The notes under the pieces: model-generated
Databases searched by the model: none
What the model saw: only the letters and a program-made list of their open reading frames with translations
What the model was told of the DNA's origin: nothing
In this document: in pieces, positions 7,660-10,213 of the stretch
How the letters are laid out: the number at the start of each line of letters is the position of its first letter
Numbering within the stretch: position 1 is the first letter of the stretch
Assembly: GCA_904063045.1 (NCBI GenBank)
Contig: CAJFCJ010000021.1
Location: forward strand, 310,001-374,000
Source: Dimorphilus gyrociliatus
Lineage: Eukaryota; Animalia; Annelida
Direction of reading: 5' to 3'
DNA length: 64,000 nt
Position numbers and translations under genes: made by a program

Positions 7660-10213
7660 TTAATCATTAAAAAATTCACATTTTTCATTTAAACAACTCA
7701 TAAAGCATGCCAACTTCTTAGAAGTAAAAGGAATCGTGGTTACTTTACCAGGTGGTCCAGGTGGACCTCGCGGTCCGATTCGGCCTGGTAATCCAGCTCT
7801 CCCCTGTCCTGTTGCTCCCGTAGCTCCGATAAATCCTCGAGGACCTATAAAGCCAGTATCACCTTGTGGCCCTGTCCATCCCGTATTTCCTAGTGGACCA
7901 GTTGCTCCAGTTTCACCTTGTGGGCCAGTTGCACCAGTATCACCTTGTGGGCCAGTTGCACCAGTATCACCTTGTGGGCCAGTTGCACCAGTATCACCGT
8001 GTGGCCCTGTCCATCCAGTATCACCTTGTGGGCCAGTTGCACCAGTATCACCGTGTGGCCCTGTCCATCCAGTTTCACCAATTCCTCCTTTTCCATTACC
8101 AGGTCGGCCTGTTGGACCTCTCTCTCCAGTATTACCTTGCGGGCCAGTTGCTCCAGTTTCACCTTGCGGGCCAGTTGCACCAGTTTCACCTTGTGGGCCA
8201 GTTGCACCAGTTTCACCTTGTGGGCCAGTTGCACCAGTATCACCGTGTGGCCCTGTCCATCCAGTATCACCTTGTGGGCCAGTTGCACCAGTATCACCGT
8301 GTGGCCCTGTCCATCCAGTTTCACCAATTCCTCCTTTTCCATTACCAGGTCGGCCTGTTGGACCTCTCTCTCCAGTATTACCTTGCGGGCCAGTTGCTCC
8401 AGTTTCACCTTGCGGGCCAGTTGCACCAGTTTCACCTTGTGGGCCAGTTGCACCAGTTTCACCTTGTGGGCCAGTTGCACCAGTATCACCGTGTGGCCCT
8501 GTCCATCCAGTATCACCTTGTGGGCCAGTTGCACCAGTATCACCGTGTGGCCCTGTCCATCCAGTTTCACCAATTCCTCCTTTTCCATTACCAGGTCGGC
8601 CTGTTGGACCTCTCTCTCCAGTATTACCTTGCGGGCCAGTTGCTCCAGTTTCACCTTGTGGGCCAGTTGCACCAGTTTCACCTTGTGGGCCAGTTGCACC
8701 AGTATCACCGTGTGGCCCTGTCCATCCAGTATCACCTTGTGGGCCAGTTGCACCAGTATCACCGTGTGGCCCTTTCCATCCAGTATCACCTTGTGGGCCA
8801 GTTGCACCAGTATCACCGTGTGGCCCTGTCCATCCAGTTTCACCAATTCCTCCTTTTCCATTACCAGGTCGGCCTGTTGGACCTCTCTCTCCAGTATTAC
8901 CTTGCGGGCCAGTTGCTCCAGTTTCACCTTGCGGGCCAGTTGCACCAGTTTCACCTTGTGGGCCAGTTGCACCAGTTTCACCTTGTGGGCCAGTTGCACC
9001 AGTATCACCGTGTGGCCCTGTCCATCCAGTTTCACCAATTCCTCCTTTTCCATTACCAGGTCGGCCTGTTGGACCTCTCTCTCCAGTATTACCTTGCGGG
9101 CCAGTTGCTCCAGTTTCACCTTGTGGGCCAGTTGCACCAGTTTCACCTTGTGGGCCAGTTGCACCAGTATCACCGTGTGGCCCTTTCCATCCAGTATCAC
9201 CTTGTGGGCCAGTTGCACCAGTATCACCGTGTGGCCCTGTCCATCCAGTTTCACCAATTCCTCCTTTTCCATTACCAGGTCGGCCTGTTGGACCTCTCTC
9301 TCCAGTATTACCTTGCGGGCCAGTTGCTCCAGTTTCACCGTGTGGCCCTTTCCATCCAGTATCACCTTGTGGGCCAGTTGCACCAGTATCACCGTGTGGC
9401 CCTGTCCATCCAGTTTCACCAATTCCTCCTTTTCCATTACCAGGTCGGCCTGTTGGACCTCTCTCTCCAGTATTACCTTGCGGGCCAGTTGCACCAGTTT
9501 CACCTTGTGGGCCAGTTGCACCAGTATCACCGTGTGGCCCTGTCCATCCAGTTTCACCAATTCCTCCTTTTCCATTACCAGGTCGGCCTGTTGGACCTCT
9601 CTCTCCAGTATCACCTTGTGGGCCAGTTGCACCAGTTTCACCTTGTGGGCCAGTTGCACCAGTATCACCTTGTGGCCCTGTCCATCCAGTTTCACCAATT
9701 CCTCCTTTTCCATTACCAGGTCGGCCTGTTGGACCTCTCTCTCCAGTATTACCTTGCGGGCCAGTTGCTCCAGTTTCACCTTGTGGGCCAGTTGCACCAG
9801 TTTCACCCTGTGACCCTGTCCATCCAGTTTCACCTTGAGGACCAGTCTGACCTGTAAAGCCAGTTAGGCCTGTAGGTCCAGTTTCACCTTGTGGGCCAGT
9901 CTGACCTGTAGATCCAGTTTGGCCTTTAGGTCCTGTGTCTCCTGTAGCTCCAGTGGGACCTGTAGGTCCTCTGTGTCCTGTAGCTCCAGTGGGACCTGTA
10001 GGTCCTCTGTGTCCTGTAGCTCCAGTGGGACCTGTAGGTCCTCTGTGTCCTGTAGCTCCTGTTTCACCTTGTGGTCCTGGCCTTTGGCAGTTGGCCCCAA
10101 AAACTGAATAAATGACTAATTATATAGAATTTTTAAATTAGGTATTAATAGATATAAGAATGTTCAGACTACTTACTGAGAATTAAGGAAAGAAGTAGAA
10201 TGACTTTGCTCAT
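7660..10213 (-). CDS. Secreted collagen-like protein (826 aa), Gly-X-Thr-rich, interrupted triple helix
   Basis: Exon 1 10213-10177 ([18 protein letters not shown] donor) joins exon 2 10103-7660 in phase: [24 protein letters not shown]...([18 protein letters not shown])n...[35 protein letters not shown]. The ORF track missed this frame and shows only its shadows. Confidence 0.9.
7850..9850. repeat. Coding minisatellite: 27-nt units with nine copies of a 57-nt spacer block
   Basis: The 57-nt block (ATTCCTCCTTTTCCATTACCAGG...) has ATTCCTCC starting at 8081, 8327, 8573, 8846, 9038, 9257, 9422, 9560 and 9698. All spacings equal 57+27n. Confidence 0.95.

Follow-up and report, generated by a model that had tools for sequence, protein, structure and literature searches.

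A gene for a secreted-looking collagen is predicted on the minus strand of contig CAJFCJ010000021.1 of the annelid Dimorphilus gyrociliatus (assembly GCA_904063045.1), within a stretch of 64,000 nucleotides (nt; positions 310,001 to 374,000 of the contig) that was analysed as a whole and is referred to here as the window; all positions are those of the window (Table 1). The sequence features listed in a preliminary description of this DNA were all recovered where it had placed them.

Structure of the predicted gene and its reading frame

The start codon of the collagen gene lies at 10213-10211 (minus strand), and exon 1, if read without splicing, runs into a stop after 14 codons. The predicted intron opens with the donor GTAAGT from 10176 and closes with an acceptor AG at 10105-10104, giving canonical GT-AG borders; were a second AG in the same frame (10117-10116) used as acceptor instead, the signal peptide would be four residues longer. 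The median intron of D. gyrociliatus measures 66 base pairs, and trans-splicing has been reported to be absent in this species (PMC7854359); the size of the predicted 73-nt intron agrees with this median. Exon 2 spans about 2.4 kilobases (kb) and carries the whole helix in a single exon. Its frame contains a TAA at 10122-10120 and no ATG ahead of the Gly-X-Y part, so that it can be translated only through another exon upstream, for which exon 1 has the right phase. At the other end, the last sense codon ends at 7663 and is followed by TAA TAA (7662-7657), which overlaps the hexamer AATAAA (7661-7656). Together, the two-exon gene appears to be complete, the exon with the ATG and signal peptide being in phase across the predicted canonical intron, and the collagen gene, having an ATG and a TATA-like box of its own, appears to be a unit separate from its neighbours.

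The collagen-coding part stands out from its surroundings in base composition, the interval 8001-10000 having 55% guanine plus cytosine (G+C) and the rest of the window about 24-38%. Tandem Repeats Finder reported a 27-nt unit in about 75 copies (7853-9900), with higher-order periods of 165-246 nt, and since the unit is repeated so often, the Gly-X-Y pattern is not due to chance. In the Gly-X-Y frame, the G+C content per codon position is 0.69/0.75/0.18, the neighbouring genes having third-position values (GC3) of 0.18-0.33; such a low, host-like GC3 is seen in the Gly-X-Y frame only. The triplets of the diverged N-terminal run occur in several spellings, five each for GAT and GPQ and three for GPT, all of which differ at the third codon position and keep glycine (Gly). 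The start codon and signal peptide, which a canonical intron connects with this frame alone, the host-like GC3, and the variants confined to third positions thus single out the Gly-X-Y frame as the coding frame.

The repeats of the core are almost identical in DNA, and too similar to inform on selection. An 84-nt linker module occurs nine times in the core, and seven of the nine copies are identical over all 84 nt; given this identity and that of the core repeats, the array is either young or homogenised. It is built by amplification and homogenisation of the 27-nt unit and of a higher-order unit of about 246 nt. Between 7736 and 9857, the 27-nt repeat keeps long open frames of 631-700 amino acids (aa) in all frames, and open-reading-frame finders will list phantom Pro/Val/Cys-rich or Leu/His-rich proteins there.

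Table 1. Features of the predicted collagen gene and of its surroundings, in window coordinates.
Feature	Position	Strand	Remarks
TATAAG, TATA-like box	10308..10313	-	about 100 nt upstream of the ATG; a pattern read from the sequence only
Exon 1	10177..10213	-	37 nt; ATG, 12-residue hydrophobic start of the signal peptide and 1 nt (phase 1)
Predicted intron	10104..10176	-	73 nt, phase 1; GTAAGT, pyrimidine tract, AG
Exon 2, coding part	7663..10103	-	end of the signal peptide, collagen domain and tail; 813 full codons from 10101
N-terminal collagen run, older and more diverged	9709..10077	-	41 triplets; one motif in three copies; synonymous codons unlike the core
Repeat core	7801..9705	-	nonapeptide blocks G-E/D-T, G-A/W-T, G-P-Q/H with nine 84-nt linker modules between them
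Sole cluster with Pro at Y (GPPGPP), C-terminal helix end	7747..7776	-	candidate triple-helix nucleation site
Non-collagen tail	7663..7746	-	28 residues; three Cys, C-x3-C-x4-C; candidate trimer-registering disulfide element
Double stop TAA TAA with overlapping AATAAA polyadenylation-signal pattern	7656..7662	-	read from the sequence
Lys/Glu-rich open frame	6006-6605	+	199 aa; repeated G-Y-E-E-V/I motifs; no Pfam match
Open frame with C-type lectin domain	11364-11942	-	Pfam Lectin_C, E 1.2e-4
Open frame, lectin-like	15347-15670	+	by sequence appearance
Basic open frame	17298-17714	-	138 aa; resembles, by eye only, the DNA-binding head of a Tc1/mariner-type transposase
Two adjacent single-exon rhodopsin-type receptor genes	17893-18903; 19242-20270	-	336 and 342 aa

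Composition and organisation of the collagen domain

The product of exon 2 has 813 aa, in which 256 Gly-X-Y triplets, or about 768 helical residues, follow the peptide FGANCQRP. The preliminary description had a signal peptide leading directly into about 780 aa of Gly-X-Y, and the secreted-looking start and the extent of the repeat (256 triplets) bear this out; the helix is, however, not uninterrupted but cut by ten register breaks into 11 runs of 6-41 triplets each. Nine of the breaks are identical GNG-K-GGI sequences (GNGKGG), one carried by each linker module, and each shifts the Gly register by one residue, whereas the remaining G-Q-G break lies 20 residues ahead of the C-terminal end of the helix. 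The segments between the breaks measure 46, 46, 55, 73, 64, 91, 82 and 82 aa, corresponding in each case to a multiple of the 9-aa unit plus one residue, the extra lysine (Lys).

Triplet counts agree with the core nonapeptide that had been proposed (G-E/D-T, G-A/W-T, G-P-Q/H), and GPH is among the commonest triplets. The dominance of threonine (Thr) and the rarity of proline (Pro) at the Y position, also proposed earlier, are evident over the 256 triplets, with Thr at 146 Y positions (57%) followed by Gln (41), His (15), Arg (14), Pro (12; 5%) and Ile (12). The X position is occupied by Pro (77), Ala (42), Glu (40), Asp (27), Trp (18) and Asn (18), so the tryptophan (Trp) described as recurrent falls on 18 X positions. 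Overall, the exon 2 product contains 34% Gly, 18.3% Thr, 11.2% Pro and 2.2% Trp.

The protein had been described as having no known non-collagenous domain, and in a Pfam scan of exon 2, Collagen (PF01391) was indeed the sole family recognised (E 4.6e-97 over nine stretches; families considered at E up to 0.01). The short C-x3-C-x4-C tail is present as described, and its first cysteine (Cys) stands 14 residues past the last triplet. A fourth Cys is found at the N-terminus (GANCQ), where it may belong to the signal peptide, and Cys is thus confined to the two ends of the protein.

Genomic setting, relatives and competing explanations

The neighbours of the collagen gene in the window are animal genes, with C-type lectin domains, rhodopsin-type receptors, an epsin-like ENTH domain and pieces of a transfer RNA (tRNA) synthetase. 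The collagen gene is flanked on its 5' side, at higher coordinates, by both lectin-type frames and on the opposite side by the Lys/Glu-rich frame at 6006-6605. The 336-aa receptor has a 42% identical relative, P0242 (7tm_1 / Srw), on Logan contigs of SRR23372228, SRR23372229 and SRR23372216. The receptor genes also served as a database control: these single-exon neighbours had no identical record, and the best word-search match to one of them was the one at 42% identity, so that proteins of this very genome seem to be missing from the libraries. The absence of the collagen from them is therefore uninformative, and the notion of an unannotated gene was abandoned.

Relatives of the collagen were sought with exon 2 or its parts alone, the 12 codons of exon 1 being too few for a search. 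A word search with the whole of exon 2 returned thousands of collagen-like matches, and each of the best 120 has head or tail domains of the kind found in collagen-like proteins from bacteria, phages or giant viruses. Among these 120, every match with a named source is bacterial or viral (Hokovirus, Bacillus infantis, Kangiella and other bacteria), and the top match shows 63% identity across 56% of the query. In the Atlas, the closest clusters consist of Bacillota proteins of the collagen-like type. Of 241 proteins retrieved, 68 contain the core nonapeptide and two, both of viral type (P0033 and P0062), contain GWT triplets; the linker module, GWTGPH and the Cys tail were found in none of the 241. 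When the triplet order of the query was shuffled, 78-98% of the local alignment score was retained against ten look-alikes, and the resemblance is therefore mainly one of triplet composition and periodicity and not demonstrable descent. Bacterial or viral homologues had been named in the preliminary description as a finding that would overturn it; the only look-alikes found are of this kind, but, being compositional, they neither refute nor support its view of the gene.

The C-terminal part yielded no relative of its own. In a word search with the C-terminal 100 aa, the matches covered the Gly-X-Y part only and no similar Cys tail was seen. The last 44 aa, compared with 1.84 billion representative proteins, gave no relative of the tail, whose 28 aa offer little search power; the single match was spurious, an unrelated bacterial protein aligned to the Gly-X-Y part. 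A PDB sequence search with the tail returned collagen peptides only, with E values of 0.49 or worse. With a tail this short, only fairly close relatives are detectable.

On the evidence of the predicted gene structure and codon use, it is somewhat more likely than not that the locus is a genuine host gene encoding a lineage-specific, recently expanded, secreted non-fibrillar collagen. Codon use is host-like, which supports a host gene. Several points weigh against this explanation. Six of six frames are open across the repeat, so that an open frame alone proves little, and the exact length of the array depends on the assembly, where near-identical repeats could have led to mis-assembly. No animal relative was found among the best 120 matches to the whole of exon 2, and no orthologue in any other animal was found in the protein libraries searched with exon 2 and the tail. 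AlphaFold gave the tail alone a weakly predicted fold, a short helix with a mean predicted local distance difference test (pLDDT) score of 64. Glycosylation, trimeric state and tissue are, moreover, features that we purely infer. Openness of every frame and near-identity of the repeats would also be expected of a silent or decaying tandem-repeat locus or of an assembly artefact, since an intact frame is weak evidence where 27-nt repeats keep all frames open. Such an origin is nevertheless considered unlikely, as ATG, signal peptide, in-phase intron, non-repetitive N- and C-terminal parts, double stop and AATAAA follow one another in the right order, the diverged N-terminal run keeps Gly at every third codon through synonymous change, and GC3 is host-like in the Gly-X-Y frame only.

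The other alternatives concern the ancestry of the gene. The Thr-rich composition recalls the cuticle collagen of the annelid Riftia pachyptila, which, according to the accounts of Mann et al. (1996) in PMC11766948 and PMC11923368, has Thr instead of hydroxyproline at Y, where it is O-galactosylated. The gene might accordingly be the worm's version of a classical annelid cuticle collagen, a true relative of those of Riftia, Alvinella and Nereis, expressed in the epidermis and deposited in the fibre layer of the cuticle. The annelid host, the low Pro at Y, and Thr at 18% of residues and at the Y position, as in Riftia (PMC11766948), speak for this, but known annelid cuticle collagens, of which those from alvinellids and from an earthworm measure 7,700-8,900 aa (PMC12403961), have a globular domain at one of their ends (PMC11766948), whereas the 813 aa encoded by exon 2 are about ten times shorter and the 256 triplets are followed by a 28-aa tail, with nothing beyond Collagen recognised. 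The tail, furthermore, has no relative among the 1.84 billion representatives. We therefore regard common descent with the classical cuticle collagens as improbable. The annelid-cuticle-like nature proposed in the preliminary description is partly supported, by the host and by Thr at Y as in Riftia, but the likeness extends to only part of the features of the class, and in view of the length, the globular domain and the lack of a tail relative the label of annelid cuticle collagen is not earned. A still less likely origin is a domesticated bacterial, phage or giant-virus collagen-like gene that was captured by an annelid, later acquired an intron and an exon for a signal peptide, and grew by expansion into a secreted matrix protein. 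It would account for the bacterial, phage or giant-virus type of all the best look-alikes and the Bacillota proteins nearest in the Atlas, for the shared nonapeptide and GWT triplets, and for the helix lying in one intron-less 2.4-kb exon, and an excess of triplets with Thr is reported for bacteria, archaea and viruses but not for the collagens of eukaryotes (PMC11923368). Against it stand the mostly compositional nature of the likeness, which survives shuffling, the lack of linker module, GWTGPH or tail in any look-alike, the lack of a globular trimerisation domain of bacterial or viral type, and the native precedent for Thr at Y that annelids offer in Riftia; the host-like codon use also argues against transfer, although AT-rich donors would look similar.

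Proposed assembly of the protein and comparison with known collagens

The host gene considered here is best seen as a collagen variant in which an animal gene structure goes together with a helix based on Thr, repeated Trp and a Cys tail for which no relatives were found. By analogy with other Thr-rich collagens, its Thr is probably O-glycosylated and its setting some form of extracellular matrix. The triple helix zips from the C- to the N-terminus, as stated in PMC11923368, and in the proposed mechanism the Cys tail and the adjacent GPPGPP would bring three chains into register, from where the helix would zip towards the N-terminus. Since Pro, and hence hydroxyproline, is almost absent from Y, stability would come from Thr at this position. 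Most likely O-glycosylated as in Riftia cuticle collagen and Bacillus BclA, Thr would replace hydroxyproline as the stabiliser and provide a hydrophilic coat. A (Gly-Pro-Thr)10 peptide folds only when its Thr is galactosylated, and Thr glycosylation has been proposed as an alternative to hydroxyproline (PMC11923368).

With 768 residues, the molecule would form a sugar-coated rod of about 0.22 µm, an estimate that uses the standard collagen rise of 0.286 nm per residue. The nine identical breaks may act as flexible joints, 15-30 triplets (13-26 nm) apart, and each joint would expose a Lys beside the sole Arg/Glu cluster; these positions are candidates for cross-linking or cleavage. The 18 Trp and 15 adjoining His would be exposed and could contribute to packing, binding or cross-linking. 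An apical or secreted matrix, such as a surface coat, mucus, an adhesive or an egg capsule, is the suggested setting.

Animal collagens held together by glycosylated Thr are known mainly from the protein chemistry of one deep-sea tubeworm, and we found no paper on the full gene, the sugar-adding enzyme or the folding rules for a Thr-glycosylated animal collagen. If expressed, the predicted gene would be a complete and compact one of Riftia-like composition in a small annelid, and it would offer a route to the glycosyltransferase and to tests of Thr-based helix stability. To our knowledge, Trp is very rare in triple helices, and an expressed gene would also show the role of repeated Trp in such a helix. 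It is possible, though doubtful, that Thr-glycosylated collagens with Riftia-type chemistry have here their first complete and tractable gene, the host worm being amenable to laboratory culture; this is likelier than acquisition from a microbe or virus, which, if true, would mean that an animal had gained a structural collagen by horizontal transfer. The triplets of an animal collagen can be used in proportions regarded as characteristic of bacteria and viruses, which calls for caution when collagen-like genes are classed as microbial from their composition. Pending expression, the interest of this predicted gene is moderate.

Among known systems, Riftia cuticle collagen resembles the worm protein in its annelid source, in Thr at the stabilising Y position and in low Pro at Y, a comparison of composition. 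Its helix, like that of other annelid cuticle collagens, is very long and ends in a globular part, as opposed to about 768 helical residues and a 28-aa tail. Fibrillar collagens have an uninterrupted helix of about 1,000 aa, whereas the worm protein has ten register breaks and no COLFI match. It also lacks the Col_cuticle_N domain of nematode cuticle collagens, and its Cys lie only at the two ends. Cnidarian minicollagens consist of a short helix between polyproline and six-Cys domains (C-x3 repeats ending in CC); the worm protein has 256 triplets, no polyproline, and three tail Cys spaced by 3 and 4 residues. FACIT collagens have an interrupted helix and two Cys four residues apart at the COL1-NC1 junction, which are thought to lock the three chains. 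The worm protein resembles them in its interrupted helix and in a C-x4-C near the C-terminal end of the helix, but it has three Cys, the first of them well past the last triplet, and no TSPN, vWA or FN3 domain in Pfam.

The bacterial, phage and giant-virus collagen-like proteins (BclA, Scl and giant-virus type, including the Hokovirus HKV1 collagen repeat protein) come closest in composition, sharing a Gly-X-Y repeat rich in Thr and Gln at Y with the triplets GPQ, GAT, GET, GDT and GPT, the nonapeptide in many cases and GWT in some viral members. Their large globular head and tail domains, for trimerisation or receptor binding, adjoin the repeat and have no counterpart in the worm protein, and they have no introns, whereas the worm gene needs a spliced upstream exon and sits among animal genes. 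None of these look-alikes has the signal-peptide exon, intron, linker module or Cys tail of the worm gene. The triplet composition of the locus thus looks microbial and its gene structure is that of an animal, one from the same phylum as Riftia, the sole animal precedent.

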